From Convolutriloba macropyga (lineage: Eukaryota): 64,000 nucleotides of DNA. The position numbers were made by a program, and so were the translations under genes. This document shows positions 34,701 through 62,830 of the stretch, one piece after another (positions within the stretch are counted from its first letter, which is position 1; the number at the start of each line of letters is the position of its first letter). The stretch lies in assembly GCF_964194025.1 (NCBI RefSeq), contig NC_134479.1, positions 30,442,001 to 30,506,000 on the forward strand. Reading direction: 5' to 3'. The notes below the pieces were generated by a model. It saw nothing but the letters and a program-made list of their open reading frames with translations. It had not been told where the DNA came from and made no database searches.

Positions 34701-37700
34701 TAGAAGATTTTCTTGCTTTTGGTACTACGAGTTTTCATGCAAAATTTTCTGATTTTTGTTCATAATTTGCCATTTTTGCTGTTGTCTTTGTTTCTTTTGT
34801 AAATTGTAACATTATTTAACAATCTAACTGTAAAAAACCTAGCAACATTTGAAATTGAACATTTTTGTTCATAACATATGGTTTGAAGGGCTGCGACACC
34901 GTTCTCTTGCAGAAATTGGTAGTTTTCTATTTTCGTTTTGTTGTTAATTTTTGTTGTCATATGCCAAATATTGTGTAATTAAAGGTCTCAGTGGCCAACT
35001 ATAGACAAAACAAATGAACTTAATAAACGATATCGGTATATAGCTAGTGGTTGTTTTGACTTGCGATTTGAATTTCTAAAAAAAAGAGTAATCGTTTTCT
35101 TCAACTTAAACCTTTTTGTTCTGGTTTGCGTTTTTCGTATTTTACAATGTATCATTTTCGTAAATTAGCCTCATTCTTTATAGCTCTTTTTAATGTTTTG
35201 TTGAATCACACAATAATTTTTCTGTTGTTTAAACGTCTTCGGGGCTTAGACAATTTGTTTCAGAAGAATTTTGTGAAGTTTAGATACTTTTCAGTTTTTG
35301 TGGTTCTTTTGTTGTCATTTTCTGATAGGCGTTTTACAAAAAGAGGTTATGATGGTCAAAGGAGACGCAAATGAAGATGTTATATTCTCGCGGTTAATAT
35401 CTTAGAAATTTAACGGCTTCAAAACTGGGGTTTCGTAAAGTTGTTTGTGAAACTTATTAGATCAGCTTGTATTGAATGTTATTTTATAGTGTTATGATTT
35501 TGTCTCATTAATAACAGTCGCAATTAATTTTCCGAGGAGTCGCAAGACAAACTGTCTACTCTTTTAGTCGAAAGCTTTTGTTGGCTATGAATTTCGAAAA
35601 TATTTGTTTTTAATAAAAAAAGATAGATTTTGAGATCTGCCAATTTTATTTCTGTCAAATTGTAGCTAAGCATCTCTATATACAATTCACATTATATATC
35701 TATTGAAATACAATTTGCTCTTCATAACGGTTTTCTTTTCCTCAAGTAATCTTTCTTCTTGGAACAACCAGTTTTCATAAAACCAATTATCATGATTTTT
35801 GCATATTTGCCCCTTTTTTGTAGGTCTTTGTTTTCTTTTCATAGTATCACAATAATGGGTGTAATTTGATTTACAAATGTTGCTACCTTCAGAAAATGCA
35901 AACGAAGACTTTTATTGTTTTTAGTGATCAGCTTAATATTTAATTGATTGGGGGACATCGTTTTCGTGCATTATTTTTCGTGCAATTTTTTAGTTTTTGT
36001 CTGTATTTGCCGTTCTTTTTTGTAGTCGTATGACATATCCTGGATCATGAAAGGCCTCAGTCGCTCTCTATTGAGGTATAAATGACTCTCTCAATGATTT
36101 CATTCGATGCGTTATGTTTCTAATCAGTTCGAATTTAATTCTTTTTTTTAAAGAGTTTTGGTCGTAATTAATATTTGTGACTATTTGATTTTTATTGCCG
36201 TCTTTTCTGGTAGTCATATAATGGTAGCCACAGGTCTCATAGGCCCTCTAGAGTAGATTGTTTTATTGTTTTAGTAGTTTGTTGAACGATATGTTGATAT
36301 GTTAATTTTTTTGATACGATCTTCAACTTTTTCTTTTTCTAAATGATTGTTTTTGTTCCGAGAATTCAAAAAAGAGCGCATAATGATCTGTTAGCGTAGT
36401 TGGTGACACTTTCGAATCATTTTTAACGTTGGAATACACGACATCACTACAAGAATTACTAGTCTTTGTTTCTCTAGTGCAGTTCGCATTTTCTACATAA
36501 TGCAGATAAAAAGACGAAACGGTGTGACCACATATATTAAAATCCCCACATATAACCGACATATAGTCTTCCGGAAGAACACTTTTCTCAAAATGGTTTC
36601 CTAAGCTTGTGCTTAGTTTTCGTTGGTCGTGTTTGGTTTGACGTATATTGTAGTTAAAAAACATTAAAATTATTATAGCAAAATTTCAGTGACAAAATTT
36701 GACACTCATTGCTGGTGTGTTTGCTTACTGTTTCGAACCTTATTTTGTTTTTCAAAAAAATACCAACTCCTCTAATTTTTTTACCCCTGCTGACAGTGAC
36801 AATTTTTTGTCTAGTCCATGTAGTGACCGTCTAGTTGCAAACAAGCTGTGTCATACTCTTCATTTATCCAGGGTTATGTTAGGCAGACGTTGCAAACAAG
36901 CTGTGTCATAATCTGCTTTTATCCAGGGTTATGTTAGGCAGACGGCTAAGGGTAAACTTTCTAAACTGTTTACTAGAATTTCTTCATGATTTGTTCAATG
37001 CGAGTATTGGAATCAAAGACGTTGAATTTTCTATTGTCTTAGTGGTAAAATTATCAAACGAGTTTTTGTAACTCGTTACCTTCAGAAATGTGCATCAATT
37101 TATGTGAAAAAATTAACTTGATTGTTTTTCGTGCGAGCTAAAAATGCCAGTGCTTTTCCGTCAGTTAATCAATGTTGTAATTTCTGTAATAATAAAATCT
37201 GATATGAACGATGAAATGGTTTTTGTAAATTTGTAGATTACTTTAAGAATTTTTTTGATTCTCTTTACTCGAGTATAAAATGCTTATCCCATCTGCGAAA
37301 TTTTCCGACATGGTTCGGAATCTTATTGATGACACAGTACTGTTATTCGCTATAAGCAATTATTTTAGGTGAAAAATGTTTATTAATCATCAAGTATTAG
37401 CGCCTGGCAAAACTATAAAACATCAAATATGATTGATAAAAATTGAATCATTAGTAATGCTGCATGACCATTTTTTATGGTTTCAGGTAATGAGGTAAGT
37501 ATTAAGCAGATGACCTTGAGGAACTTCAAAGCATAGAATATTCGTCTTGTAAACAAATCGAAAAATGTCCCATGTGAAGAACATTTTTGTTCTTACATTA
37601 TCGGCTGAAGCAAGTTTTCCATTTTCACTGGCCTACATAGCCTAGCTTTCTGCTGCAGGAAGGGGGAGGAAACATTTTAGAAAGCGGTTTGTAGCCGAGG

Positions 37701-40700
37701 CCCATATTCGGCGCATATCCATCGTTTTTCTCTGCAAATAACGTGTCGTTTGAACCAGTCGTAAGTGATCAAAAATACCAAATTGTGTCCATGAACAGAG
37801 TAGAAACTGTCCGACATTCCCAGATAGTTAGGTCTATGTACAATAGTGATGTCCATTCGATGTTTGAGATTTGATCGAAATCATACATTGGCACGAACTT
37901 ACTTCACGCCCTTAAGCTAAGCTAAGCTGACATACCCAATTATAATGTCATGCAGCGACACCTTTATTGTTCCGACCCCCACTTTAGTGGGGAGGGAGGA
38001 ACTAAATACTCAACTGGGTTTTTTTGGTTCAGTCAATATTGGCCGATCGATATATTCATCGTAGAGAATTTTGAGTAGTATCATTGAAAAGCTCGTCCAG
38101 CGTAGAATACGGAATTAAAAATATGTTTTCGATTTTCGTTTTTTACAGGAACTTATCGAGGTTTAAAGTTTTGTGAACATTCGGCTGTTTATGTTCACAT
38201 TTTCAGTATTTTTTGCTAAAATTTGACACAATTTCGCTAATTTAATTCAAAATAAAATAACATTTTTAACGGCAGAGTGTTGTTGTTACCGTTAGAGATA
38301 GAAGAGCGTTGCTGAATTGTTTGATTGAAGTTTATTTTGGCTAAAAATTTTTGATTTTCAAAATTCAAACTTTCATCAAAAATAGCACAAAATATGCTTT
38401 TTTGGTCCACTGTTAAAGTTTGCCAGAGTTAGTGACCTAGAAACCTTAAAACAGACTCCCTAATCTCAAAAAGAGCGCTAGTTTCAATTAGGCGCCGTAT
38501 GAAAGTCTTCTGAAAATGCATCGTTCTTTTTTATATATTTTAAGAAGTCCACGCAACCATTGGTCTAATTCGCAAACACTTGCAACACTTGGTCGGTTTG
38601 CTGGGCGCGCGACCAAATCAGGGAAAGGTTCGACAATATGGATTCTTAGAATCAGAGGCGTTTTGTTTTTTTTTTCAAAAAATTTTGCTTTTGTTTTTTA
38701 ATGTTAAGTACTGACAATATGTTTTATTGATGGCTCATTTATTGACAGCTCCAATTTTGCGTAAATTTGAGGCCGAATGTAGATACGGTTTGTTTTCAGA
38801 GAACCAAAGGGTTTTTATGGCTTTGAGGAAGAGTTTCAGTAAAATTTAACTGAATTCTTGTCCTTGGCATTCAATTGTTACTCTTTTGGCAGTCTGATTT
38901 TTAAGTTTAACCACCCAAAGATCTCATTTTTCTCTCAAGAGGTGCAAGTGAAACTTTTCTATTCATTCGGTTGTTACCTAATGTTTCTTTTGTTCTTGAA
39001 TGTATTTGTTTTAAGAAAATTTGGTGATTTTTTGAACTTGTCAATTTTTTATATTATTTTAGTCAACATTTTGCCTATTCGCAGTAAATTCAGGTTAACC
39101 TTTCATCCGTGTAGAATACAAACTAATTTTGTGGCCGATTGTTTTAATAGAAGATTTTCTTGCTTTTGGTACTACGAGTTTTCATGCAAAATTTTCTGAT
39201 TTTTGTTCATAATTTGCCATTTTTGCTGTTGTCTTTGTTTCTTTTGTAAATTGTAACATTATTTAACAATCTAACTGTAAAAAACCTAGCAACATTTGAA
39301 ATTGAACATTTTTGTTCATAACATATGGTTTGAAGGGCTGCGACACCGTTCTCTTGCAGAAATTGGTAGTTTTCTATTTTCGTTTTGTTGTTAATTTTTG
39401 TTGTCATATGCCAAATATTGTGTAATTAAAGGTCTCAGTGGCCAACTATAGACAAAACAAATGAACTTAATAAACGATATCGGTATATAGCTAGTGGTTG
39501 TTTTGACTTGCGATTTGAATTTCTAAAAAAAAGAGTAATCGTTTTCTTCAACTTAAACCTTTTTGTTCTGGTTTGCGTTTTTCGTATTTTACAATGTATC
39601 ATTTTCGTAAATTAGCCTCATTCTTTATAGCTCTTTTTAATGTTTTGTTGAATCACACAATAATTTTTCTGTTGTTTAAACGTCTTCGGGGCTTAGACAA
39701 TTTGTTTCAGAAGAATTTTGTGAAGTTTAGATACTTTTCAGTTTTTGTGGTTCTTTTGTTGTCATTTTCTGATAGGCGTTTTACAAAAAGAGGTTATGAT
39801 GGTCAAAGGAGACGCAAATGAAGATGTTATATTCTCGCGGTTAATATCTTAGAAATTTAACGGCTTCAAAACTGGGGTTTCGTAAAGTTGTTTGTGAAAC
39901 TTATTAGATCAGCTTGTATTGAATGTTATTTTATAGTGTTATGATTTTGTCTCATTAATAACAGTCGCAATTAATTTTCCGAGGAGTCGCAAGACAAACT
40001 GTCTACTCTTTTAGTCGAAAGCTTTTGTTGGCTATGAATTTCGAAAATATTTGTTTTTAATAAAAAAAGATAGATTTTGAGATCTGCCAATTTTATTTCT
40101 GTCAAATTGTAGCTAAGCATCTCTATATACAATTCACATTATATATCTATTGAAATACAATTTGCTCTTCATAACGGTTTTCTTTTCCTCAAGTAATCTT
40201 TCTTCTTGGAACAACCAGTTTTCATAAAACCAATTATCATGATTTTTGCATATTTGCCCCTTTTTTGTAGGTCTTTGTTTTCTTTTCATAGTATCACAAT
40301 AATGGGTGTAATTTGATTTACAAATGTTGCTACCTTCAGAAAATGCAAACGAAGACTTTTATTGTTTTTAGTGATCAGCTTAATATTTAATTGATTGGGG
40401 GACATCGTTTTCGTGCATTATTTTTCGTGCAATTTTTTAGTTTTTGTCTGTATTTGCCGTTCTTTTTTGTAGTCGTATGACATATCCTGGATCATGAAAG
40501 GCCTCAGTCGCTCTCTATTGAGGTATAAATGACTCTCTCAATGATTTCATTCGATGCGTTATGTTTCTAATCAGTTCGAATTTAATTCTTTTTTTTAAAG
40601 AGTTTTGGTCGTAATTAATATTTGTGACTATTTGATTTTTATTGCCGTCTTTTCTGGTAGTCATATAATGGTAGCCACAGGTCTCATAGGCCCTCTAGAG

Positions 40701-43700
40701 TAGATTGTTTTATTGTTTTAGTAGTTTGTTGAACGATATGTTGATATGTTAATTTTTTTTTATCTCTTACTCATTTGGTAGACAATTAAGTGAAAAATGT
40801 AGATGAGCGGGGTCGGAACTTAATGTGCGAACGCACATTACCGAGCCTCCTTGTTTAACTTATAAATACCTTTGAATGCGTTTCAAGTGAAAACTCGAGT
40901 CTTTGTGTTGTGCTAAGAATTTTCGGGAATCGTTCCTAGAGAAAAGGGTAGATATTTTTGAAACTAACTGCTTCTAAGAAGCTCCGCCTACTTTTGTTTC
41001 CAGTTTTTGTTGGTTCAAGAAGTAAGCTTCAGGTTGATGAGTCTACTTGTTCAAAAATAACCGGATGATGATTTTTGAAACAAATTTTGCGCTCTAATTT
41101 TGGAGAAATCTGCTCGCTGTCTTGGTAATTTTAATTTTTTGGACAATTACAGCGATCCACCGTTTTCATCTTTGTGTTTTTATTGTTTATTATGTTGCAT
41201 GTTTTCCTGTTTTATTGTCATGGACATCACTGTAAAATTGGCAATGTATGCAGTGAATTCTTGTTCACACCCACATCTTCTGCGACATATTTCAACTGGC
41301 CAGTTCCAAAGCCGACTGCTGTAATTCGGCTGCGTCCGCACTTGTCCAAACCAACACTCACGTAGTTCAGCTTTGTTTTCGTAGCTGATGTAAAGTCGGT
41401 AGCTCAAAATTGTCAAGAGTTTTGGTTGACAAACTTCTCGTTAATAAAGTCTTTATTGCAATTAAACAGATATTTTTTGTTTTCAAAAACGCTTGGAAAT
41501 AATTTCAATTGATCAATTGCTCTCGAACGAAGGTGAAGTTTGAAGTAATTCCTGTAGTCATGCAGGAAAGCTTTATTAATCAATTTCAGTTTTTGAATTG
41601 TCTAGCTGATCTAAATTGTTCTTGTTCGCAAATTTAAGCTGTTGCACTATTAACAATTACATTAGAAGTCCAAAATTGTTGTTTTAACCTTTAATAAGCT
41701 CCAATTACGTCTTTTGAAGCCCCATGATAATTTATTACCCTCCCTTTGCTGAAGAAGAGGGGCCTGTAGCTTCAACATGCTTAAATAGAATCGAGGCCTG
41801 CCTGTCGCTCGAGAGCAGTCGTCTGATAATAATCGGTTATTTTGACAACTAAGAACAATTTTCCGCATCTATTTGGAGAAATGTATCTTTGTTAACAGCC
41901 GCTATCATCTACTCAAACGGTTATTAATTTTGTTTAAAATCTCTGAATTTGTTTCAGTATTTATCAATGGAACTGTAACGTTTTATGCTGAGATGATTGA
42001 ATTTAAGTATTTCTTCTTTTGGTTTGAAAACCTCGTTCTTTTGGTTTGATTTGTCTGTCCACCATTGAGGCATATTCAATTAACCTCTAATGTAGTATTC
42101 AATTGGAGATAGTCCTTTGTTTCTGCCATTTTCGATGAACAGCTGGGTTTGAAAACTGCAACACTTGACAATAGAATTTGAAAGGTCGTAGCTGTTTTCG
42201 TTTCCAAGTGCGAACCAGTTGAAATGTTCATAATTTCTGCTTATAATAATCTCGAAGACTGTACTGTATCTAAAAGAGGTCAAGCATGCCTTTTAGAAGT
42301 GTGTTGAAAGACGATGTTTCTAGCAATAGTAATAGGTAATATTTTATAGTATATTTAATAGTCACTTCAATGCAGTTTTAACATTTAAAATTTTCATTTT
42401 AGATCCATTTTTTGAGGATTATTAAAAAGTTACTGGACAAATCAATTTAACCTAAACGGCTGTTTTTCAACATTATTCGTTTTTAACTTTTTGATTATTA
42501 GTTACTTTCATTTGAAATAGAATGAAAAACTAATTAGAATCGCCAAAAATTATAACCTCGGTCTGTTTGCTCTTATAGTTTTATGTTCATGGTTGCTGGG
42601 CGTGATATGAATCTATCGCAACCAAACATAAGAATTTATTTAACGTTTGCATGTCAAGACGAAATTTGGTGAATGAAATGCCGATCGAGTTGCCAATCCG
42701 AATTGAGAAAAGTTGTCTCAACCCTCCGTGGTGACAAGTTCAACCTTTAACTGAACCGGTCGTTGTTCGATACCCCTCCCCAGGGGGGTCTATAATTGTA
42801 TAATTTTTACCTGTCTTGCCATTTGTATTGTCTCTGGTTGTTCTCGACAAGATATCCATACAGGCAGAAGTTTGTGCTGAGCATTGCACATCTTCTATTC
42901 AACTCATTGCCATTTTTGTCAGAGAGAATGAACACTGAAGTTCAGTTGCAATAAATATACCAGGGGAAGTGTTAACAGTGGTTGCCAAGTAAATGGAGTC
43001 GAATATATTCTTGTGCATTAAGATTCCTATGCATTTGGTAGATTGAGTAGTTTGAACATATTGGTTAGCAAGATATATAAAGTAACTTTCAATTTTATCC
43101 CGAACTTATTTGGCGTGATATGTGGCGTGATAGCCGAGAGGTAAGGTGTGTGGGTCACACGCCAATAATTGAGAGTTCAATCCCCTGCCTCCGTGAAGCT
43201 TTCTGTGTAAGGATGAGCTCTTACTTAACCATAGCTTCAGGTTGACCATAGCCTGACCAATGTTGGCTGCAATGATGGTACCACGTGAAAGTTTCAGACG
43301 CAAAAAAAGTGGCTAAAGCCACCAAAAAAAGAGCAATGCTGCTCATAAAAAGAACAGTCTGAAATGTGGGGAATAATAAGAAAAAGGGCAGCTGAAAACA
43401 GGCTACTGTAGGCCTAATGCTGTTCCACTGCGATTACGCAGAAACCACAATTAATTATTGTTGGCTGAATGTTTGAGATGACCAATTTTTTTGTTAGCTC
43501 AACGTCATTATGGTACAGAGATTTTGCTTCCGCCTCCACTAAATATAATTATAGCATATAAATATATAAAATATAAATATAGCATATAAATATATAAAAT
43601 ATAAATATAGCATATAAATATATAAAATATAGATATAGCATATAAATAAAATTATAGCATATAAATATAACCTATTTTTGGTTTGAAATGGTAAGTCTTC

Positions 43701-46700: not shown

Positions 46701-49700
46701 TTTTTGCACTATCGCCCAAAATAAATAATTGAGTGATACGACGATTTATTTGGAGCGATGGTTTTCTCCTGTCATATTATGAATTGTGGTACCATTAGCC
46801 TCTATTATTAGCCATTTCTGTCTTCTTGAGAGCACTGCTATGCATAGTTGTTAATGCGTTTCAGATTATTTCAAAAATTATTTTTAATTCCAAAGATTAA
46901 GTTAAATTTTAATTTTTACTATCGTTGGGGGTGTGAATGATAAGTGTTTAAAGTGTTTAATACTCACCGAAAATGAAGCTGAAAGCTAAGATATACAACA
47001 AGCTCTGCATGGCCATTATTGAGGTTGGATATGTTCATTAAGTTCAGTAGATTCAGAAAGTAACCTTTGAAATGTCTCGTTTCTTAATTATTATTAGTTC
47101 ATCCCCTTTTGCTAACAAAAGCAAAGTTCACCAAGGCATTTCGAATAATTTAGTACAATGAAATGAAAAGGCAGTGTTTGACAAAAGTATTTGCATACTT
47201 TGAGGTACTAAAGTTCTGAATGTCTAAGAAAGGTAGCTGATAGGTTTTAAGAATAACGCACAGGAGCGCTAATATGCTTGCGGACATTGTTCCAACTCAT
47301 TTAAAAAAGTATGTAAATATAAAACTTGTTCAACACACATTTCTATGATCGGCTACGCATTGAAAAATAAAAAAGATAGACTCCTGAAGGTCAGTATCAT
47401 AGTTGCATTCTTTTTTCTAGCAAAAACTACTATTGAAAAATATTTGAAATAACTCTTGTTTCAAAAGAATACCTTTTGCCATTCGCCGTCTTGCTGCCTT
47501 CAATATGACCCTGGGTCCCTTATCGTAAGAAGTAAAGAAATGTGTCAGAGAAAAATCTTGATGGAGAAACTGGCTTTTATGTAAATAGTAGTCGAACAAA
47601 AAATATGTTTTCATAGACACTATGAGTAAAATTTTTAACAGACTGTAAAGCACGCCCGTTTTAATAAAGGAAACTGCCGGGAACATGCGAGCTGAAATTA
47701 ATTAAAATGGATTCAGTTGTTGAAACCATGTCCCACTGTTGAAAAAAATCGAAGAACTGCTGTGTTCGACGTGTTGACTGTTCTAAAGGTCTAACTATTC
47801 CTGAAGCCTGAAATTTTCTATACATATTGGTCGTATGGGTGAACCAATACCTTTTATATTTACCTTCTACCTTTTTTAAAGGCAAAAGTCATCGATCGAC
47901 GAAAAGTTGCTCAGCAAAAAAAATGTGAGGCCTGCATAAAGTTCCCAACTATATTGGGAACTTTATAAGTTGGAACCATAAGTTCGGTAAATTTTTTGTA
48001 TCTGAAAAATACCTAACATAGTAATTATGTCACAAATTCGGCTCTTGTTGATCGATCTTTCGACTGAAACAAATTTCCCTTGAACACAAGTTGAAGTGAA
48101 TTGAATGTTAGAGAATTGAATTATTAAATGTGGTGAGATGACTGATTTTGTTTCAGAAATGCGGGAGTTCGCGAGGCATACGAAAGCGTCCTCGAATTTG
48201 AAGTTAGTCTTGTATCATTTTTGCAACTGTATCCATAAAAATATAAGGGGTTTTAATTTCACTTTTCGGAGCTCACAATTTTCTTTACACGGCGAAAGTA
48301 AATCTGCAGTCCTCTAAATTTGAACCATTTTTTTTAACTATTGGAACTTAAGTGATATCTTCAGACGTTGCTCTGGCGCCGGGTCTTTAATGGAAATTTA
48401 TGCAGTTTTCAACGATGTGGCTGTGTTTAAAATCCATGTGATAAATTAGTGTTTTGAATAATATATTTTCTTGAATGATCTGATGCTTGGCATTTAACTT
48501 CTTCGACCCGTGTTCCAACTAAGTTAACGATTTAGGACGAGCTGAATAACTTTTCCGCGGAAGTCGACAGGCAATGTACGAAAGGATCGTCAGTGAAAGA
48601 ATCGGGAAGCTCCTATGAACCAATTCAGGGCGAGAAACTTGACGGATCCTTGCGATTGTGCATGCTTACTGGGCCTAATCCGTTAGTAGCCTTGTCAAAC
48701 TAACAGAAATGACTTCCGAGGATTTTACAAGCTTGTTGTCAATAGTTTCTGTTGAGTTTTAGCGGCACTTAGATCTCGACCTTCAACAAGATGAGTTTTC
48801 TCTAAACTCATGTAATCTGGTTTGAGGAAACGTTGCATTATCAAATACCGTTAATTTATTTTGCTGTGCTCTTGAGTCCCATGACAAAAAGGCTAATAGA
48901 AATTTTTTGTCAATTTTATCGTTTCGTTTTTAAATTTAGCGACGTAAAACTTCAATCTATTTCATCAGAGGACTTAGCTATTTTATTAGGATGCCGATAA
49001 GGTTGAGTTGCATTAATTTGAAATATTTTGGGAGCAAAAATTTAGCAAGGCGAAAACCCGCAATAGATTGATCATTGTTTTCGTTTGAGAAAAGAAAACA
49101 GATTCTATTTGTTTAAATATGTTTTTGGTCCATGCACAATTTTGTTATTTAGAGGCGACGAAATTGAAGTGTCACTGTCACAAATCTTCAGTGATTGTCG
49201 TATCCTAAGGAACCTCTTTGGGGAACCGAGCGGCGGTCAAGGTGACTCTATAGACTGGAAACAAACCGAAGGACAAAAACCCAGTCTATGCATTGATAAC
49301 AATAGCGTTCAGAGATCTAGCGAAGATAGTCTGAATGTTTCTGAATCGGTTTATGAAGCTGATGATAATATCTCCGGCCAGGGGAAATCACTGAGAGCTG
49401 AGAATCGTGATCAAGATGAAGTTCAAGCAACGTCTGAAGTGTTTACGTTGTTTGTGCTCCTCCGGCACTTTGCCTGACTACCGTGACGTAACCACATCCA
49501 CCATTTGATCGCGCCAGAAGCACAGGTATAACTAATTTATTTTTTGGCAAAACTCTGGATTACTACCTCGTTTACGTGATCGAAATAGAACTTATGGTGA
49601 TCATCTGTACTTTGAACACCTGTTTGCTCTGAACAGAAATGTTGGCAATTTTTTAGTGTTATATTTCTGATGTAATTTTTTGAGGTAATAGAGCTTTACC

Positions 49701-52700: not shown

Positions 52701-55700
52701 CCAGCCACGCGTGGTGAGCGGATTTTCTTGAGAAATGGGTTTTTTCTATCTCTTAGTAGTTTATACTCTGTATTAGATCAAATTAAGAGATGAAATGAAT
52801 TTTAACTCAAAATGACGATATTACTCTACTTTGTAATAAAAGAAGTTTTTAGATCTAGTAACAGAACTTCCATTGTTTACAATTGTTGGTTAAGAATCAG
52901 TTGTGTGTTCGACTATTTGCATAAATTGGCTAATAAAATTTATTTTGCTTTATTTACCAACTGCATCTGGTCACTCACTGCTCGTCCTGACAATTTTTTG
53001 AACTTTTTTCCGTCTATTGTGCCCGTTATATTAGTGGGCATATAACTTGCTACCCCACGAGCACGTGCTACCTTTGTACATAGTAACGTTCTATATAGCT
53101 CAAGGGGAGGCAAAACAGTACAGACCCGTCTCTCTTCATGATTTCAGAGTAGAGAATAATTTCTACCAATTTGAGTAATAAAAAGACAAGGAGGCTCGTT
53201 AATATGCGTTCGCACATGATATTCGGACCCGAGCTCATCTACATTTTTGAATTAATTGACAACCAAAAGAAGAGATAACACAAATACATGTTTGAGTTTA
53301 AAACAATCGTTACACAACCTATTACAGCCTCATTACAGCGCCAATCAGATCTGACATTAAAGAGACTACGAGACGAAAAAAAAACAAACAACAAAATTAG
53401 CAAAAACAAAAATTTCACGGCAAAAACAATATCTAAATTTGGAAGCACATTGTAACAACGTCATAATGCAGTCAGATAAAACCTTAACTACTCAAAATCA
53501 CTTTCTCCTATCTATACAACAGATGGAAAGTTTTTTAAATGAGACTAAGTAACAAGTCAACAACGAGAACGAACAATGAGGCGAAATTCAAAAATTAATC
53601 AACATTTTTTAAACCAAGAAATTTCAAGTCTTAAAAATCATCAGTTTTTAACCAACTAATCCTTGATGAGTTACTAAAAAGTCATTACAAAACCAAGAGG
53701 ACTTGTCTTTGGGTAGACTAAATCATATAAATGAACTAAAGAAAATCTTAAAAAATACAAACGTTTTGCGAAAGCACAAACTTTTGCTACCATTAAAATC
53801 ATTAGCTATTATCTGATTATTGTATTTTTAATTCAATTCTTATTTCTACTAATTCAGCTGAAGGAATTATACTGAGAGATTAAATAAGTGTATTTGGGCG
53901 ACATTTGAAAACCACTGGGATCTATTACTACGCGATCGTTCTGAAAGAGGAGAAAAAGGAACGCAAAAGCAGCAAATTCAAGAAAAAATTGAGCGAGAAA
54001 TGTGTCGAAGGCATTAAAAATTGAATTTTTAACTAAAAACTTTTGAATGTTCAATAAATTTTTTAACAGCAAGCTGATATCTCTTTTTTATCAATATAAC
54101 TTCAGAAAATCAAATCTGAGGTAATACATTAGAACCACGAAATTTTTGAGAAAACTCGGGGATATCAAGGCCATTAAATTCATTAGCTTTCTTTCAACGG
54201 AAGCCACTGAATACGCTAAATTATGCCTCGATTGGACAACATGTTTGTTTGCCATTGATATTTCCTCAATAAGACCTCACAACAAGTTTTTGACGATGAA
54301 AACGACAACAAAGACAGGCAAAAACCAAAAATTCAGTAGAAAAGTGCCAGAAGAAAGTGTCGAAGCAATTTAAATCATAATCTCTTCTCCGAAAACTTTA
54401 TCTATGATCCGTTGAACGTCTTCCCTAAACGAATGAGAACTATTAGTAATAGTATGATGTGATAAGATTTCAAAAGAATCCAAAAATAAAAATTTATCCG
54501 AAAATTTACATTTATATGAAAACTCGTGGCATTGAAGTTTTAAAACTAATAGGTATAAGATAAAACCGCTAACCAGATTAATTTTGGCTGCAGTAGGAAA
54601 GAAAGCCTGTAGGTACTAAGACTGACTAAAAGTTCACGAAAAAGGTTTAGGATTAGTTAATTTTCAAAAAATATTTCAAAAAACTGTTTTTAAAGTCTTT
54701 AACAGTCATTAATCTCAAAAGCACAGTCATTAAAGTCATGTTTTTCATGCATAGATAATCAATAAGACATCACAATAGGTCTCAAGACTACAAAAACAAC
54801 AACAAAAGCAATCGAGAACCAAAATTCAGTAGAAAATGCGAGAAGAAATGTCGAAGCATTTAAACCATTAGCTTTTCTCTGAAACCTTTTATCTGTGAGC
54901 GACTGAATGCCTTCTCTAAGCCAATGGGATTAAAATAATATTTGGATAATGTGTATAATATTTGGATAATGTGTGTAATATTTGGATAATGTGATAAGAG
55001 TTCAAAAGTAACCAATAATACAAAAATATCCAAAAAAAATCTTTAAAAACTTTGAAATCTTGTGTGATTGAAGTCATATAACTAAAAGTTAGAAGATAAA
55101 AGCGCTGACCAGTTTAATTTTAGTTGCAGTAGAATGCAAATGGGTCCTGTCAATACTGCGACTCACTAACAGTTCACGAAAAAAGTTTAAGATTGGTTAA
55201 TGTTCGAAAAAAATATCGAAAAATTATCTTTAAATTCTTAACAGCCATTAAATTCAATAGCTTTCAACGGGGTCAATAAATATGCGCAAATATGACCCGA
55301 TGTGAGTACAGGGATGTTTTTGATGCATAGATGATCAATAAGACATCACAACAAGTCTTATGACTATGAAAACGAAAACAAAATCAGGCAAATACAAAAA
55401 ATTCAGTAGAAAAGTGCGAGAAAATGTCGAAGCAATTCAAACCATAAGATTTTCTCTGAAAACTTTATCTGTGATCCACTGAACGTCTTCTTTAAGCTAA
55501 TGAGATTAGAACAAAATTTGGATAATGTGATTAATATTTGGATAATGTGATAAGAGTTCAAAAATAACCAATAATACGAAAATATCCAAAAAATTTTTAA
55601 AAAGTTAAATCTTGTGTCATTGAAGCCATATAACCAAAATTTTGAAGATAAAACCGCTGACCAGATTAAATTTATTTGCAGTAGAAATTAAATGGGTGCT

Positions 55701-58700
55701 GTCAATACTGAGACTGACTAACAGTTCACGAAAAAAGTTTAAGATTGCCTATTATTCAAAAAAATTTTCGAAAATTTATCCTTAATTTCTTAACAGCCAT
55801 TAAATTCAATAACTTTCAACGGAAGTCAACGAATACGCTCAAATATAACCCTATGGGAGTATGGGGACGTTTTTCATGCATAGGTGATCAATAAGACATC
55901 ACAACAATTCTTATGACTATGAAAACGAAAACAAAATTAGGCAAATACAAAAAATTCAGTAGAAAAGTGCGAGAAAATGTCGAAGCCATTCAAACCATAA
56001 GATTTTCTCTGAAAACTTTATCTGTGATCCACTGAACGTCCTCTTTAAGCTAATGAGACTAGAACAAAATTTGGATAATGTGATTAATATTTGGATAATG
56101 TGATAAGAGTTCAAAAGTAACCAATAATACGAAAATATCCAAAAAATTTTTAAAAAGTTAAATCTTGTGTCATTGAAGCCATATAACCAAAAGTTTGAAG
56201 ATAAAACCGCTGACCAGATTAAATTTATTTGCAGTAGAAATTAAATGGGTGCTGTCAATACTGAGACTGACTAACAGTTCACGAAAAAAGTTTAAGATTG
56301 CCTATTATTCAAAAAAAATTTCGAAAATTTATCCTTAATTTCTTAACAGCCATTAAATTCAATAACTTTCAACGGAAGTCAACGAATACGCTCAAATATA
56401 ACCCTATGGGAGTATGGGGACGGTTTTCATGCATAGGTGATCAATAAGACATCACAACAATTCTTATGACTATGAAAACGAAAACAAAATTAGGCAAATA
56501 CAAAAAATTCAGTAGAAAAGTGCGAGAAAATGTCGAAGCCATTCAAACCATAAGATTTTCTCTGAAAACTTTATCTGTGATCCACTGAACGTCTTCTTTA
56601 AGCTAATGAGATTAGAACAAAATTTGGATAATTTGATTAATATTTGGATAATGTGATAAGAGTTCAAAAATAACCAATAATACGAAAATATCCAAAAAAT
56701 TTTTAAAAAGTTAAATCTTGTGTCATTGAAGCCATATAACCAAAAATTTGAAGATAAAACCGCTGACCAGATTAAATTTATTTGCAGTAGAAATTAAATG
56801 GGTGCTGTCAATACTGAGACTGACTAACAGTTCACGAAAAAAGTTTAAGATTGCCTATTATTCAAAAAAATTTTCGAAAATTTATCCTTAATTTCTTAAC
56901 AGCCATTAAATTCAATAACTTTCAACGGAAGTCAACGAATACGCTCAAATATAACCCTATGGGAGTATGGGGACGTTTTTCATGCATAGGTGATCAATAA
57001 GACATCACAACAAGTCTTATAACTATGAAAACAACAACAAAAACAAGCAGAAACCAAAAATTCAGTAGAAAAGTACGAGAAAATGTCGAAGCCATTTTAA
57101 CCATATGGTTTACTCTAAAAACTTTATCTGTGATCCACTGAACGTCTTCTTTAAGCCAATAGGAGCTATCAGTTTGAGGATAATGTGATAAGGTTTAAAA
57201 GTAACGAATAATACGGAAATGTCAAAAATTTTTTGAAATCTTGTGTCATTGAAGTGTCATTATAACTAAAAGTTAGAAGATAAAACCGCTAGTCAGATTA
57301 AATTTGGTCACAGTAGGACGGAAGAGGGTGCTGTGACCACTGAGACTGACTTTTAGTTCACGATAATAAGTTTATGATTGGTTATTGTTCAAAAAAAAAT
57401 TTTTCGATATATTTTTAAAGTCCTAACAGCCATTGGCTGTCCACTCAAAGCACTAGATATGTTCACCTAATGCTCATTACGGAACAAATTGCACGGTTAG
57501 TCAATGAGTTTATGCCATAAGATTCCAGAAAAATAGTAAAACCTCAAAAAGAAATAAAGAAATTCAAAATTTCATTTAAAATTACGAGTCGAAGCCAAAA
57601 AAAAACATGAGCAATTCCTTGAGAACATTTTTTTTGCTCATTCGACTGTAAAGGAGGTTTGTCATTAACGGAACCGGGATGTGAAAAGTGACTTGTCTCT
57701 AGGTGACTTAAAAAAGCAAAAAAAAGTAGAAAATTTTTATAGAAAAAGAGCTCTCAAAGAGTTTTTGATAGTGAACTTCCCTATGAAACCAGAAATAGTC
57801 TTTTTAATCGCTTTTAGTCTATTAGGAACACAAATTTGGTTCATTTTTTGGCGTGAAATTCAATTTTGAAATACTATTTTAGAAAATATCTTAATTTGAA
57901 GAAAAATCGCTTTAAAAGTAAACAAATATCGAGTGTTCACACAAAACTTCAATCCTCGATAACTCCTCGAAAAAAACGGAAATCAAAAAAATCTGTTTAA
58001 TTTTGAATTCTACGCTGGACCAGATTTTTAATGATACCACTCACATTTCTCTGCGATGAATATATCGATCGGCCAAAATTGTCTGAACAAAAAAACCCAT
58101 TTTAGTATATAGTTCCTCCCCCCCCCCCCCCCGCAAGTGGGGTCGGAACAAAAATTTAACTTACTTATTGGAAGCAACGTAGTTAAGGGATATTCGGTGT
58201 TTTAGATCTACAATTGGTTGGGTCTCCAGGTGTCATTTCGGAAAGTGTGGGTTAGTGAGACGATGAAATACTATGCGGGACAGAAACAACAGGGTGTGAA
58301 GTTCCCTCGACCGTTCGAGAACATCGAAGATGATACACTTCAGGTTCTGCCATACTTAATGGTGTTTTGATGCTACCGTTAAGTTTAGCAGTGCTACAGA
58401 TCGCTTTTGTAGGAAAGCATCCAGAAATGAAATTGTTTGTGCGGTATAAGATCAACTAGTTCAAAAGTAACTTATGAACATATATTAACAGAATTATTAA
58501 GAAAAGCATGAGAATATGCCATTGAACGAAAAGCTGGGACCATTTATGTCCTACTTATACGTATAAAAAAGAACAGCCTAATGTGAGTTGTCCATATACA
58601 TTAAATTTTAAAATGATACTATGATTTGATTCATATGGACTGACATCTAAGTGTATAACCTTTGGATGTAGTCGTGCAATTTGCAGCTTTGAAAAAAGTT

Positions 58701-59083
58701 AAGCAGACGACGCTTTGCAAATAGCGATCATTGTACAAAGCTGAAGTTTTGAAAATATAAAAATTTTGATGAAGCAAAATTTTATTCATTGGTACTAAAC
58801 TCAAAAGATGAAGCCGTAATATGATCCAAAGTTTTTGTAATAGTTAAAGAGCCGAATTCGTCTAGATCTGGGCAATATCTTAACCTGCTCTATTATGTTA
58901 TGGTTCAAACTTTAGATGGCTGGTGACTATTTGGTTGACCAGAATGGCACTCTGATTCTGTCTCACCCTCAGAAAACAGTTGCTGATAGACCGACTATTG
59001 ATGACATTGTCATGAGCGTCAAGAGAGCACTTGACTCGAAGAGGGATCAGAATGTGAGAAAAGAGATGGGCGCTGCTTCTTAA
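16689..59083 (+). CDS. SELENOL: Selenoprotein L (thioredoxin-like fold, UxxU); spliced CDS join(16689-16779,16853-16940,17004-17057,48157-48202,48536-48681,49153-49525,52501-52713,58206-58343,58916-59083), 1317 nt, 438 aa, Sec250 and Sec253
   Basis: All 8 introns are GT-AG with matching phases (1,2,2,0,2,0,0,0). The only in-frame stops are two TGA in LLRHFA-U-LP-U-RNH. SelL/AhpC-TSA-type motifs LVIVSFGS, D.PRVIYNWLGL, EDDTLQMAGDYLVD and DRPTIDDI are present, and a SECIS lies downstream. Confidence 0.93.
16853..16940 (+). CDS. SELENOL: SelL coding exon 2 (C-SEENSLEVMKSLGPFMFPIMVAYADMFT-K)
   Basis: Acceptor ttttatAG, donor AA|GTTAGT; ..AYADMF.. resembles the SelL N-terminal domain. Confidence 0.85.
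17004..17057 (+). CDS. SELENOL: SelL coding exon 3 (K-LEVDSASSFEAVVSKQY-R)
   Basis: Acceptor tgtttAG, donor AG|GTACGC; phase 2 joins exon 4 to give ...KQYRNAGVRE... Confidence 0.85.
17300..18380 (+). mobile_element. Old, heavily decayed LINE (CR1/L2-like) RT fragment
   Basis: QGSLLGRLIFC..NDIP...YGCAGDAKF (17930-18040) is a degenerate PQGSxLGPxLF...YADD RT core. Confidence 0.65.
19502..19760 (-). repeat. 3' LTR of BEL/Pao element
   Basis: TGTCAC...GATGACA; about 6 substitutions versus the 5' LTR; preceded on the minus strand by the purine-rich tract AAATGGGGCCGGCTA (19761-19775). Confidence 0.95.
20240..25940 (-). pseudogene. BEL/Pao gag-pol polyprotein with two nonsense codons (25860-25862, 24846-24848) and one frameshift (~23235)
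   Basis: ATG at 25940; gag FDGDPLSW and Cys-His knuckles (CFNCFGSHHVQQC, CRSADCGKKHHTMLH); protease YLDNGS; RT VYMDDLY; RNase H FTDAS; integrase HSG..C..C, GLDFIGP, SDNG, WERL. Confidence 0.95.
26020..26410 (-). repeat. Degenerate tandem array of ~11-bp AAACCTACCTG units in the BEL 5' leader
   Basis: About 12 exact CCTACCTG plus about 10 variants; higher-order ~140-bp repeat (26160-26250 versus 26300-26390). Confidence 0.9.
26890..26901 (-). promoter_or_regulatory. Primer-binding site (tRNA-Lys type)
   Basis: TGACGCCCAACG, 3 nt inside the 5' LTR; 11/12 match to the tRNA-Lys PBS TGGCGCCCAACG. Confidence 0.75.
26905..27163 (-). repeat. 5' LTR of BEL/Pao element
   Basis: Direct repeat of 19502-19760, followed by TSD ACACT. 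Confidence 0.95.
28885..33100 (-). mobile_element. Decayed CR1/L2-type LINE (ORF1 remnant, APE endonuclease, RT) with internal duplications
   Basis: APE motifs ICGDFNI and TDHYA (31876-32217); RT motifs NFRPIS, QYGFR, FLDLKK, GLPHCSVLGPLLF, LYADDT (29474-30269); AT-rich tail at ~28890. The 30240-31910 segment is present in 2-3 overlapping copies. Confidence 0.88.
31865..40758. repeat. Near-perfect tandem duplication of a 4447-bp unit (31865-36311 / 36312-40758)
   Basis: Six ORFs recur identically at +4447 (e.g. 31876/36323, 35126/39573); only one mismatch spotted by eye (34340 A versus 38787 G). Confidence 0.97.
33519..36311. mobile_element. Truncated duplicate of the Helentron-like (HINE) element at 37966-40854
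   Basis: Same left end (TTGTTCCGACCCCCACTTTAGTGGG); lacks the hairpin end because the duplication breakpoint cuts it. Confidence 0.7.
37966..40854. mobile_element. Non-autonomous Helentron-associated (DINE-1/HINE-like) element, ~2.9 kb
   Basis: Subterminal inverted repeat TTCCGACCCC (37970-37979) / GGGGTCGGAA (40809-40818); perfect hairpin TAATGTGCG-AA-CGCACATTA (40821-40840); end ...CCTTGT into a T run; no TSD; both ends match 53186-58154 in reverse complement. Confidence 0.78.
43123..43330 (+). mobile_element. tRNA-derived SINE
   Basis: A-box TAGCCGAGAGG (43131-43141), B-box GTTCAATCC (43175-43183), unrelated body, 3' hairpin GTGGC-TAAA-GCCAC and A tail. Confidence 0.7.
43541..43670. repeat. 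AT-rich minisatellite, ~28-bp unit (ATAGCATATAAATATATAAAATATAAAT) x ~4.5
   Basis: Direct reading of tandem units. Confidence 0.9.
44325..45400. mobile_element. ~1.1-kb non-coding interspersed repeat (MITE-like), copy 1
   Basis: Shares GATCTGTTCACACATTTTCATGATTTTTG...GTCACGCCGAAACAGG with 50375-51480, 61565-62460 and 62460-62830; AATAGC(C/T)GCC / GGCGGCTATT inverted motifs near the ends. Confidence 0.7.
45949..46082. repeat. 69-bp tandem duplication containing a 13-bp-arm palindrome
   Basis: TTATTACATTTCT-GG-AGAAATGTAATAA at 45955-45982, repeated at +69 with one mismatch. Confidence 0.9.
47400..48060 (-). mobile_element. Highly decayed piggyBac-like transposase fragment
   Basis: EQLFVD..LLPLK, PIR..GFR and F.DYY remnants in the order expected for piggyBac LSVDE.M.PFKG / KPIRFGFK / FDNYF; frameshifted. 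Confidence 0.45.
48157..48202 (+). CDS. SELENOL: SelL coding exon 4 (R-NAGVREAYESVLEFE)
   Basis: Acceptor tgtttcAG, donor GAA|GTTAGT; VRE..E..LE.E pattern. Confidence 0.88.
48536..48681 (+). CDS. SELENOL: SelL coding exon 5 (DELNNFSAEVDRQ...LTGPN-P)
   Basis: Acceptor gatttAG, donor CC|GTTAGT, phase 2 matches exon 6. Confidence 0.88.
49153..49525 (+). CDS. SELENOL: SelL coding exon 6, containing both Sec codons (TGA 49475-49477 and 49484-49486)
   Basis: TTT GCC TGA CTA CCG TGA CGT AAC CAC = FA-U-L-P-U-RNH; acceptor ttatttAG, donor CAG|GTATAA. Confidence 0.95.
50375..51480. mobile_element. ~1.1-kb interspersed repeat (MITE-like), copy 2
   Basis: Collinear similarity to 44325-45400. Confidence 0.7.
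52501..52713 (+). CDS. SELENOL: SelL coding exon 7 (AIWRDLRVRLVIVSFGSPKGLRLW...CTDQPRV)
   Basis: Acceptor gtttacAG, donor GTG|GTGAGC; VIVSFG motif. Confidence 0.93.
53186..58154. mobile_element. Helentron-associated (DINE-1/HINE-like) element, ~5 kb, carrying an internal satellite; opposite orientation to 37966-40854
   Basis: Starts ACAAGGAGGCTCG + degenerate hairpin + TTCGGACCC; ends GTGGGGTCGGAACAAAAA (subTIR 58139-58148); 57920-58150 is the reverse complement of 37966-38190. Confidence 0.78.
54150..57435. repeat. Satellite array, ~553-bp unit x ~6
   Basis: Anchor TCAATAAGAC at 54266, 54759, 55335, 55888, 56441 and 56994 (spacings 493, 576, 553, 553, 553); internal subrepeat TAATATTTGGATAATGTG. 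Confidence 0.95.
58206..58343 (+). CDS. SELENOL: SelL coding exon 8 (IYNWLGLQVSFRKVW...EDDTLQ)
   Basis: Acceptor gttttAG, donor CAG|GTTCTG; Y..LGL..S..KVW motif. Confidence 0.93.
58916..59083 (+). CDS. SELENOL: SelL terminal coding exon 9 (MAGDYLVDQNG...DRPTIDDI...AAS*)
   Basis: Acceptor actttAG; Q|MAGDY matches the family QxGGDF motif; DRP motif; TAA at 59081-59083. Confidence 0.93.
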   Translation: MAGDYLVDQNGTLILSHPQKTVADRPTIDDIVMSVKRALDSKRDQNVRKEMGAAS

Positions 59084-59287
59084 ACTCGGAAGTCTGAATT
59101 TAAGGACAGGATTGCAGACGTAGTTATTTATCTAATCACTGCAGAATAGACGAAATCAATGCGAAAGCAACCATTTTTTTCTCGTTTTGTAGTTGACGTG
59201 TTATTTTTAAAAATCGAAAAAAAAACGAAATGAATTCTGATAGTTCACTGGGACATTGATTGTCTTATGCCGTATTTTTCTCCTGAA

Positions 59288-59415
59288 ATGTGTTAATATA
59301 GCGAATGACGACTGTGTGGAAAACCAATAAATCAGCTCTTTTCAGTTTGTCCAATCAAAATTGAGCATTCTGTTTTGAGCGTGGATCTGCCAGTCTGACA
59401 TGTTTTATAGCACAT
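59288..59415 (+). promoter_or_regulatory. SECIS element (type II-like, long apical extension)
   Basis: Helix I ATGTGTTA(59288-95)/TAGCACAT(59408-15); core ATGAC(59305-09)/TGAC(59396-99); helix II GACTG-T-GTGGA(59310-20)/TCTGC-CAGTC(59386-95); unpaired AAA 59321-23; ~205 nt after the stop codon. Confidence 0.85.
59326..59331 (+). promoter_or_regulatory. Candidate polyadenylation hexamer AATAAA inside the SECIS
   Basis: The only AATAAA I found between the stop codon and ~60770; U/GU-rich sequence follows at 59368-59384. Confidence 0.35.
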
Positions 59416-61564
59416 ATCAATTTATCTTTGTTGTGGACCAATTTATGAAGATTGCGAGATATAAACTCACACGTGATTTATGTAAATTTAAATTATTTTA
59501 AATGTAATCAGTGTTTAAGTAGATTTAATCGGATTTTTACCCCATTGTATTTAAGTTGGATCCTTCCTATATTACATACCATATTGTGCTGTTATCTCTC
59601 TAATATCAAAAATTATTCTTATCTATGCCTCACTAAAATTTTACTTTTTTTACAACTGAAGTTTTCAGCTAAATCAATTCGGGAGTGTTGCGTAGGCTTT
59701 GCTAGTGCTCTTACTGGTTCTAAAATATTGTCGTATTCAGTTTTGTCTCAATTTTCAGGGCAGATAAGTTACCATTGATGCGTGAAGGAATCATTTAAAA
59801 GATGGCCTGATGCTTGTATTGTTGAACAGGTGTACTTTGCCTGTGTTTAATCAAAAACATCAAAGAAGTCAAGACCCAGTTGACAGTCTTTAAAGGGAAA
59901 ATCAAACTACAAGATGCCACAATGAAGAAGCATTCATGCGCAATGTGTGCCAAAAGAAATCTTAGGTTTGAAGAATTGAAGGACATCAACCACTGGGCCG
60001 CAAAGTTGGTGATACGGCAACTCATTTAGTAAGACCTAAAGACGTAATACGATCAATCCGATCCGAGTGAACTGGACCCTTTAAAGGGAAGCTTATGAAG
60101 CTAGGTTGTAATTTTTAATAGCTGCCTTCATGTTAGCAGGCTATTATTGCCCTCATATATTTTTTAATAGCCGCCTCTGAACGTCTATTAATTAGACGTC
60201 TCCTTTTTTACAATCATATGATCTTCACGCTTCCGGATTTTTCACATCAGTGAGAAGTCAATTAGAGTGGTGCTTTTAGTTACGCTGATGTACTATAGGG
60301 AGCTAAAATTGGAGACATGGTGTGAAGCAGCCCCCCCCCCCCCCAACAGCAGCTCACTTCACCCCCCCCCCTCTCCTGCACATCGTTCAGGCCGTAAGCA
60401 CCCCGTTTCTGATTTCTTATAAGTGAGCGAGCAAGAAAACCGCAAGTTCAGGGATTGAATATACTTTGAAAAATTTGTTTCAATGAACAAAATTGAATAG
60501 CAGAGAAAAGACAGTGTTTCTTTTGTTCATGCCTTCTTTTGAAACAGCGAGAAATGTACCAAGCAATTTTTCTTTGAATTTCGACAATATTGCAGAAAAT
60601 TGACAATTTAATTTGAGTTTTTAAATTTATTTCGAAATTAGAGATGCTTTTGTGCTTTTTTTGTGTTGTGCAAATTAGTTTGAGCAATGAAGTTGGCTCG
60701 ATTACTTGAAATATTGTTTTCACTTTGTATTTGTAAAGAGAGGGAAGCAAGAAAACCGGAAGTTCAGGAGTGAATAAAGTGTAAAAAAATGGTTTTGGTG
60801 AACAAATTCGGAGAGCAGAGAAAAGAAAGAGTGGTTCTTTTTTTCATGCTTTCTTTTAAAGCAGCGGCAGAAAAGTAGGCGTGACAATTTTTTTTGCAAA
60901 GCGTGCTATTTTTCTTTGTTCATGTGGCTTTTCAAGCTTTTTTGTTTGAAAATTCTACGTCTGATTGGTTGTAATAGTCTTAGGGTATATTTTTTGGCTG
61001 TTTTGATAGCGTTTCAAAAGTTTTTGTTAATTAAACAAGTTTTATAATACTTTAATGGTTTTTCAACGAGTTCTCCGGTTTTATGTCTTTAGCTATTTTT
61101 GGTCCAGTATTTTTTATTGCTTTTTACTTGTTGCTGAATGGAAGCATAATGCTCGTGGGCAGTTTCTTTTACAAAATAAAAACACGTTCTTTGGTACCAA
61201 GCAATTTTTTGTCTTTGACTAAATTTTGACTGCAAAATGCAAAAAAAATGAAATTTTTCTTCATTTCTTTAGAGTTTTTCGCTTAAATTCAAAATTAGAG
61301 ATTTTTTGTGCTTATATTGGCTCGTCTGATTTTGTGCGAGCAATGAAGTAGTCTCAATTACTTGAAAGTTTGTTCTCTTTGTTTTCGTACTTGAACAAAA
61401 TAAAAAATGTAGAATTTTTTTCTTTTAATTACTTTAGTTAAATTTCCTTTTTCATTTAATATAGTCTTCTCTCTTATCTTCACTGCCATCAGACATCAGA
61501 AACAAGTCTTTCGACAGACTGCTTCTTGGCAAAGACATCTTTGAGTCTTTTTTTTTCGGAATTC

Positions 61565-62830
61565 TTCCGGCTATGTTTTTTTCAAAGATCTGTTCACACT
61601 TGAAAATTGGAGCGGAAAATCCACGGCATGAAATTTTTCAATCTATTTTGTAAGTAGAGTGAGAAAACAGTGTATGAACAACAATTTGCTTTCTCGCTAG
61701 TGGTTTTCTTTTTTCACATGCAGCCTTTTCGCTTTGATTTTACTTTTCGATTTTCGATCGGATTTTTTTCTAAATTATTCCAATCCTGTCATAGTACATT
61801 CTAGGTCTAACGTCCTTTGATAACGTCCTTTTTTTACGTAAGTGACGACTTTGACGCTTGAATTCTGACTTACTTCATTGTTTCAATTGAATGGATTTTA
61901 AATACTTTCACGAACTGAATTACGTAATGTAGTTAATACGGTCAAACTAGTCTGGAAGTATGCAATTCACAGAAACCGTTTTGAAACTTAAACTTATGGT
62001 GTGAAGGGCGGTTCTTAGAGGTTGACCCACCTCCGCCTCCCCACAACAATCCCCCACAGCAACCCACTCTCACTTCATCCCACCCCTTCACATCGTTCAG
62101 GCCATAAGGGCCAAAAACTGCACTCCCACCGTTGCCGCTGATACCCAAACGTGGCTAGCTACTGACAAAGTCAACCGCTCGCTAAAGAAACGTGAAATCC
62201 CGGCCATTAAGTCATAATGCATTAGGTTATCAAAGTTTATTAAAGCGATTGACAGGTGGCGTTAGTATTATGCTTAAAAGCCTTCAGTTTATAAGCTTAA
62301 TTAAGTGTAATTTTAGAGTCTAACCTAATATGCAGAATTTACGCACCAAATAAGAACACTTTGACACTTTTGTTTCTCTGATTTTTTTCTGTTTCAATCC
62401 CAATGTGCGTGAAGCGGGTCAGCGGCTGCTATTTTCGAACAATTTGCAAGCTATGTTTTAGAATTCAAAGAAATAGAATTGTTTTGGGGCACTGACTTTT
62501 CAAGATCTGTTAACACATTTTCATGATTTTTGCAGTGGAATTTGCGAAGAAATTTTTGGTCACGCCGAAACAGGGTTGAAGAAGCGAGTGGTTTTGAAAC
62601 TATTTTTTTCACTTAATAGAAAATCGAGTTCAAACAAAATTTGATTTCTCGATTGTTCGGTTTCTTATTGTTCACGTGTGGCAATTTGACCTTCTTTTCT
62701 ATTTAAGTTTTTTGATCGCATTTTTTGTAAGCTGTTTATTTTATTGTAAGCAATTCTTTTATTGTCCTTTCTAGGTCTAGTTTATTGCCCAGTCAATGAA
62801 AGTTTGTTCAATTTTAGATCAGGGTTTGTC
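61565..62830. mobile_element. Further fragmented copies of the ~1.1-kb interspersed repeat
   Basis: GATCTGTT(C/A)ACAC and GGTCACGCCGAAACAGG motifs; ATTAAGTCA..GCATTAGGTTATCAAAGTT shared with ~45060; one copy is split by an insertion at ~61945-62200. Confidence 0.65.

Follow-up and report, generated by a model that had tools for sequence, protein, structure and literature searches.

An AATAAA hexamer within the candidate SECIS of a predicted selenoprotein L gene in Convolutriloba macropyga

The selenoprotein L locus and its surroundings

The window (the whole 64-kb stretch of Convolutriloba macropyga DNA that was analysed, in which there are no runs of N) carries on its + strand the four 3′ exons of a gene that appears to be selenoprotein L, a peroxiredoxin-like protein with a UxxU redox motif (Table 1). 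The two in-frame TGA codons of this motif lie three codons apart and upstream of three introns, and the string RHFAULPURNHI, which includes both UGAs, recurs in the transcript contig L001. A full-library protein search with the last exon returned distant relatives only, among them P0001, a 161-aa protein encoded on L001; exon 58209–58343 is 78% identical to it. P0001 and a second relative, P0004, carry the PF13911 (AhpC/TSA_2) domain, and the nearest named relative of P0001 is from the acoel Symsagittifera roscoffensis. The window exons themselves are too short for such an assignment and gave no match to Pfam; word searches of the protein collections that took the last exon and exon 3 as queries, and an exact look-up, gave no match from the same species. 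L001 is a Logan contig of 1466 nt from run ERR1712226 and is a near full-length polyadenylated selenoprotein L mRNA, with at least 190 residues ahead of its first UGA, both UGAs, a compact SECIS at 1258–1306, an ATTAAA at 1426 (120 nt past the SECIS and ∼15 nt before the A-tail) and the A-tail itself.

The assembled sequence at the 3′ end of the gene agrees with that in four sequencing runs (two samples from one study), the only ones that a search for runs containing this stretch returned; it gave no RNA run. Contigs from these runs are unbroken from 58122 to 60344 or beyond, and since they cross the intron at flat depth the four runs must be of DNA. They show no differing letters, the hexamer and the expansion described below included, so that neither is an assembly artefact; one of the two samples may be the assembly's own source.

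A tandem array with a unit of ∼553 bp occupies window positions 55340–57160, in an intron between selenoprotein L exons, and its open reading frame strings repeat at 55342, 55895, 56448, and 57001; Tandem Repeats Finder misses this array because the longest period it considered was 500. A short repeat of very high copy number fills 57900–58200, just upstream of exon 58209, where the summed word depth in the four DNA runs is 2e5 to 1.8e6 vs 29–53 in the single-copy flank. On the other side of the gene end, 60324–60830 is a moderately repeated stretch, and at 60330 the contigs from the DNA runs differ in the length of a poly-C tract, with 2 or 6 extra C. Upstream of the exon with the selenocysteine codons, 36003–36339 and 40441–40786 contain identical open reading frame strings at a distance of ∼4.4 kb, suggesting a local segmental duplication.

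Table 1. Features of the predicted selenoprotein L gene and of its 3′ region (window positions)
Feature	Position	Strand	Basis or remark
Downstream exons	∼49153–49524, 52501–∼52700, 58209–58343, 58916–59083	+	Edges placed by eye from splice motifs
UxxU redox motif, in-frame TGA 49475–77 and 49484–86	49475–49486	+	Context RHFA-U-LP-U-RNHI
Last coding exon, stop TAA 59081–83	58916–59083	+	53% identical to P0001
Candidate SECIS, type-2 layout, 95 nt from AUGA to GA	59285–59415	+	Fold, candidate ranking, core alignment with relatives
SECIS 5′ core AUGA	59305–59308	+	Invariant in alignment with relatives
Helix II	59310–20 with 59386–95	+	Ten pairs, one bulge
Unpaired AAAA (AAR motif)	59320–59323	+	11–12 nt above core
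Mini-stem, three pairs	CCA 59324–26 with UGG 59382–84	+	Fold
AATAAA hexamer	59326–59331	+	Sequence reading
Apical loop expansion, lineage-specific, hairpin-forming, ∼55 nt	59327–59381	+	Missing in L001, L005, L006, L007
Zone of presumed cleavage if AATAAA were used	59341–59361	+	CA at 59343, 59352, 59356
U/GU-rich stretch, candidate downstream element	59368–59384	+	+37 to +53 from hexamer
SECIS 3′ core UGAC (GA 59397–98)	59396–59399	+	Faces AUGA 59305–08
GU-rich run adjoining SECIS 3′ side	59421–59436	+	Sequence; putative function
Variant hexamers nearest 3′ of SECIS: TATAAA 59460–65, TGTAAA 59481–86 (TTTAAA 59487, 59497)	59460–59486	+	Candidate true poly(A) signals
Next canonical AATAAA	60773–60778	+	Within repeated DNA; depth raised across 60728–60828

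The candidate SECIS and its counterparts in relatives

A hairpin that begins ∼220 nt past the stop codon of this UxxU gene has the organization of a type-2 SECIS, with an AUGA/GA core quartet, a helix II, an unpaired AA(R) and then a further stem. The segment 59285–59410 forms a long hairpin with a folding energy of −31 kcal/mol (z = −2.25). When candidates of the form AUGA..AA..GA were scored by duplex energy, the element with its AUGA at 59305 ranked first on either strand within 59000–60100, and it is one of three candidates that reach this score on the + strand of the 64-kb window. A search for a second SECIS in 59084–62000 gave weak candidates only, with poor helix II, and the 59285–59415 hairpin thus appears to be the only credible SECIS for the putative selenoprotein L gene. 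The Rfam SECIS covariance models did not match it at gathering score or at E values up to 10. They likewise miss the compact selenoprotein L SECISes of all the relatives, fish included, at E up to 1; because the same library misses these, its blank says little about the identity of the hairpin and was rejected as evidence against a SECIS.

For comparison, 3′ regions were taken from two transcript contigs (L001 and L006), the S. roscoffensis chromosome locus (L005), a genomic scaffold (L007/L008) and two fish sequences (L002 and L004). A metagenome scan for more relatives added one new locus, which is without a 3′UTR, and an alignment of nine sequences was too diverse for scanning. The SECIS is compact in L001, L005, L007, and the two fish, where AUGA to GA spans 46–51 nt; for L006 the choice among the best candidates, of 49–82 nt, is ambiguous. 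In a three-way alignment of the compact elements the helix II pairing is kept through changes on both sides. In L001, L005, L007, and the fish, as in the window, the element follows the stop codon of a gene of the same family and has AUGA, an AAA motif, a CC(A)/UGG mini-stem and GA as its 3′ core; the relatives' elements differ from that of the window in their length and in having no hexamer, whereas the window element is 95 nt long and carries the hexamer on an extra hairpin. Neither AAUAAA nor AUUAAA occurs inside the SECIS regions of L001, L005, L006, L007, L002, or L004. Conservation of the hexamer in relatives, which an earlier note on this DNA had named as a check, is not seen: the hexamer is absent, together with the whole ∼55-nt expansion, from all four of L001, L005, L006, and L007, which are distant relatives (53–78% amino-acid identity per exon).

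The alignment with S. roscoffensis locates the expansion precisely. The core common to the two is GAAAACCA ... UGGAUCU.CC; in S. roscoffensis a short U-rich loop separates GAAAACCA from UGGAUCU.CC, whereas in the window ∼55 nt lie between the same CCA and UGG. The UGUUUU of the candidate downstream element matches part of the S. roscoffensis SECIS apical loop, so that this part of what was read earlier as a downstream element corresponds to part of the ancestral apical loop. As its closing base the mini-stem uses the first A of the hexamer, whose remaining five bases open an 8-nt internal loop. The hexamer thus lies right at the 5′ junction of an expansion that is specific to this lineage, and it is not conserved within the SECIS family.

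The 61-nt stretch 59324–59384, which includes the expansion, folds well by itself (−15 kcal/mol, z = −3.0; 2 of 200 shuffles fold equally well). No second copy of the expansion occurs in the window, and its depth in the DNA runs is that of single-copy sequence, so that it cannot be called a repeat or a mobile element; an origin as a MITE is likewise unsupported. The 5′ arm of the extension, 59325–59353, resembles the 5′ part of U7 snRNA (a CAGCUCUUUU run and then UUUGUC), a likeness that was treated as chance (Rfam RF00066, 14.3 bits, E = 3.8, with the 3′ hairpin absent). Near the relatives' genes, S. roscoffensis L005 6689–6790 and 7519–7623 and L007 3071–3191 are near-perfect, MITE-like hairpins of ∼100 nt, which match miRNA models from plants and animals with scores under the gathering cutoffs.

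Context and predicted pairing of the hexamer

The earlier note had pointed to an AATAAA in the apical extension, followed by CA dinucleotides and U/GU-rich sequence, and all of these are present in the sequence where it placed them. The CAs are at 59343–44, 59352–53, and 59356–57 (+12, +21, and +25), and the hexamer, the CAs and the U/GU-rich run all lie within the best SECIS candidate. At the level of sequence the parts of a functional poly(A) site are thus found here: an AAUAAA, a CA 10–30 nt downstream of it, and a U/GU-rich element no more than ∼40 nt from the CA. The weak variants that the note listed downstream, TATAAA at 59460 and ACTAAA at 59632 (+ strand), are also there. Between 57553 and 60773 on the + strand the 59326 hexamer is the only AATAAA or ATTAAA. 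However, the missing downstream canonical hexamer is weak evidence for use of the internal one, because the relatives are also without nearby canonical hexamers; past the stop codon the first such hexamer comes at +485 in L005 and at +1471 in L007, and the 553 nt of 3′UTR in the L006 transcript contain none.

The caution in the same note that AATAAA is common by chance holds for this window, where 62 copies lie on the + strand (0.97 per kb); the probability of at least one by chance is ∼5% in the 62-nt extension and ∼11% in the 128-nt element. All 149 AATAAA sequences on both strands of the window, most of which are without function, served as a comparison set. A CA lies at +10 to +30 from 77% of them, and 18% do as well as the 59326 site when CA, GU-richness, and GU motif are taken jointly. 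The poly(A)-like context of the 59326 hexamer is therefore decent but non-diagnostic, and the combination of hexamer and context is uncommon (∼1–2%), yet within chance for a feature that was chosen post hoc.

The geometry of a cut at this site is as had been proposed. Cleavage 10–30 nt past the hexamer would remove the 3′ arm of the SECIS, that is, the 3′ strands of the mini-stem and of helix II and the 3′ GA core (59382–59399 in all), and without that arm both UGAs would act as premature stops. The suggestion that folding could mask the site fared less well. Partition-function folding was performed in the full 3′UTR context and with nascent RNAs that end at successive points; in the folded state the mean probability of being unpaired is 0.86 for the hexamer (0.31, 0.94, 0.89, 1.0, 1.0, and 0.98 for its successive bases), so the hexamer is not predicted to be hidden by pairing. 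Only the presumed cleavage zone (0.46) and the GU-rich element (0.40) are predicted to be partly paired.

Interpretation of the embedded hexamer

Several readings of this arrangement can be set beside one another. One functional reading is leaky premature polyadenylation, in which a sizeable share of transcripts would be constitutively cut at the site, as an unregulated cost and not as a switch; the outcome would be mRNAs without a SECIS that stop at the first UGA, and hence NMD or an N-terminal fragment. The canonical hexamer with CA at +12 to +26 and a GU-rich run at +37 to +53, its predicted single-strandedness and the distance of 1.4 kb to the next canonical signal all fit such use, but a hairpin with z = −3 half buries both the cleavage zone and the downstream element, and a cost of this kind is removable by one point mutation; leaky use is considered unlikely. 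The regulated switch that the earlier note had in mind, in which use of the internal site would vary with selenium supply, SECIS folding or SBP2 occupancy and so set the level of mRNA competent for selenocysteine insertion, seems very unlikely. SBP2 binds the SECIS core and helix II, not the apical extension, nothing links the site to selenium, and the hexamer and extension are missing in all four relatives. In its favour are the geometry and the precedent of SELENOP, where the choice of poly(A) site removes a SECIS (PMC5133445). On the functional side, then, the evidence leans against a switch.

It is also conceivable that the hexamer is the real poly(A) signal of the gene and that the folded SECIS brings it near a cleavage site just 3′ of the hairpin, leaving the SECIS intact at the mRNA end. 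The hexamer is the only canonical one near the gene end, CA at 59413–59418 and a good GU-rich run (59421–59436) lie directly past the SECIS, and HTLV-1 provides a precedent (PMC3694450). But the bridge itself is conjectural, the 3′ strand of helix I would be at or beyond the cut, and L001 has an ordinary ATTAAA 120 nt past its compact SECIS, all of which make such an arrangement highly improbable. A working embedded signal whose outcome is set by the folding of the SECIS would combine these possibilities, being cut inside the hairpin with loss of recoding when the SECIS is unfolded, and bypassed or bridged 3′ when it is folded; the chance that it operates here is judged to be very small. Very little weight, finally, is given to a decaying gene, a young pseudogene whose SECIS was disabled by the 55-nt insertion and in which the hexamer is without consequence. 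In favour of decay, the apical extension has about twice the usual length, but the gene keeps open reading frames and sequence conservation in its four 3′ exons (78% and 53% identity to L001), and neither the two UGAs nor the SECIS core, helix II, or the AAR spacing is disrupted.

The AATAAA is probably best understood as a cryptic and mostly bypassed hexamer, a by-product of the ∼55-nt expansion of the apical loop. The SECIS apical loop in this lineage would have grown by ∼55 AU-rich nt that form an extra imperfect hairpin, and the hexamer would have arisen across the junction, with its first A coming from the ancestral CCA/UGG mini-stem and its other five bases from the start of the expansion. 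Productive mRNAs would then have to read through it, because both in-frame UGAs are conserved and the gene offers no other credible SECIS. Transcription completes the entire 3′ side of this element no more than ∼80 nt past the hexamer, and for this reason bypass may be the usual outcome: the SECIS rod probably closes before the cleavage machinery commits. In the folded rod the presumed cleavage zone and GU-rich element would be about half paired, and the hexamer would be a poor substrate, enclosed in an 8-by-1 internal loop and with a downstream element next to it that is partly paired. The true 3′ end of the mRNA probably lies further downstream, at a non-canonical hexamer. Against bypass stand the predicted unpaired state of the hexamer (0.86), the presence of only weak variants 3′ of the SECIS, and the position of the hexamer as the only canonical one over ∼3.2 kb of + strand, with a respectable CA and GU-rich context that resembles that of a used site.

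The belief expressed in the earlier note that a coupling of alternative polyadenylation to selenocysteine recoding had not been described holds only in part. Human and rhesus SELENOP have a well-supported poly(A) site between SECIS 1 and SECIS 2, and 10–25% of the human mRNA is without SECIS 2 (PMC5133445), so removal of a SECIS by choice of poly(A) site is known; there, as would be the case here, a poly(A) site upstream of a recoding structure gives mRNAs that lack a SECIS, so that site choice affects UGA redefinition. The SELENOP site, however, lies between two complete SECISes, one of which is left, and its use is proven by 3′-end data, whereas the worm selenoprotein L hexamer, known here from sequence alone, is within the only SECIS, and its use would abolish recoding altogether. 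The transcript variants of SELENOS arise by alternative 3′UTR processing and are not known to depend on a signal inside a hairpin. They differ in the number of SECIS elements (PMC5133445), and alternative SelS transcripts governing selenocysteine incorporation are the subject of PMC3628699; the likeness is that isoforms differ in SECIS presence and hence in their capacity for selenocysteine insertion, and the difference is that SELENOS is a mammalian gene with experimental support. The Rex-responsive element of HTLV-1 bridges an AAUAAA and its downstream element (PMC3694450). In HTLV-1 and foamy virus, as may be the case in the worm gene, the hexamer is in or beside a large RNA structure whose fold decides if and where cleavage takes place (PMC3694450), but the viral cases are in an LTR context and have experimental proof, while that of the worm is read from its DNA. 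The part of the claim that may stand is the placement: no paper that describes a poly(A) hexamer within the hairpin of a SECIS came up in a search of the literature outside the subscription journals, and a general polyadenylation review does not treat masking by structure.

If the hexamer is used, the transcript would lose its only SECIS, and the mRNA, instead of giving an enzyme with two selenocysteines, would be subject to NMD or yield an N-terminal stub; were this true, it would be a very direct tie of 3′-end choice to redefinition of the genetic code, tighter than that in SELENOP. For now the locus is chiefly of use as a natural test case, in which a candidate SECIS accommodates 55 nt inserted at its apex and the gene must read through a canonical hexamer.
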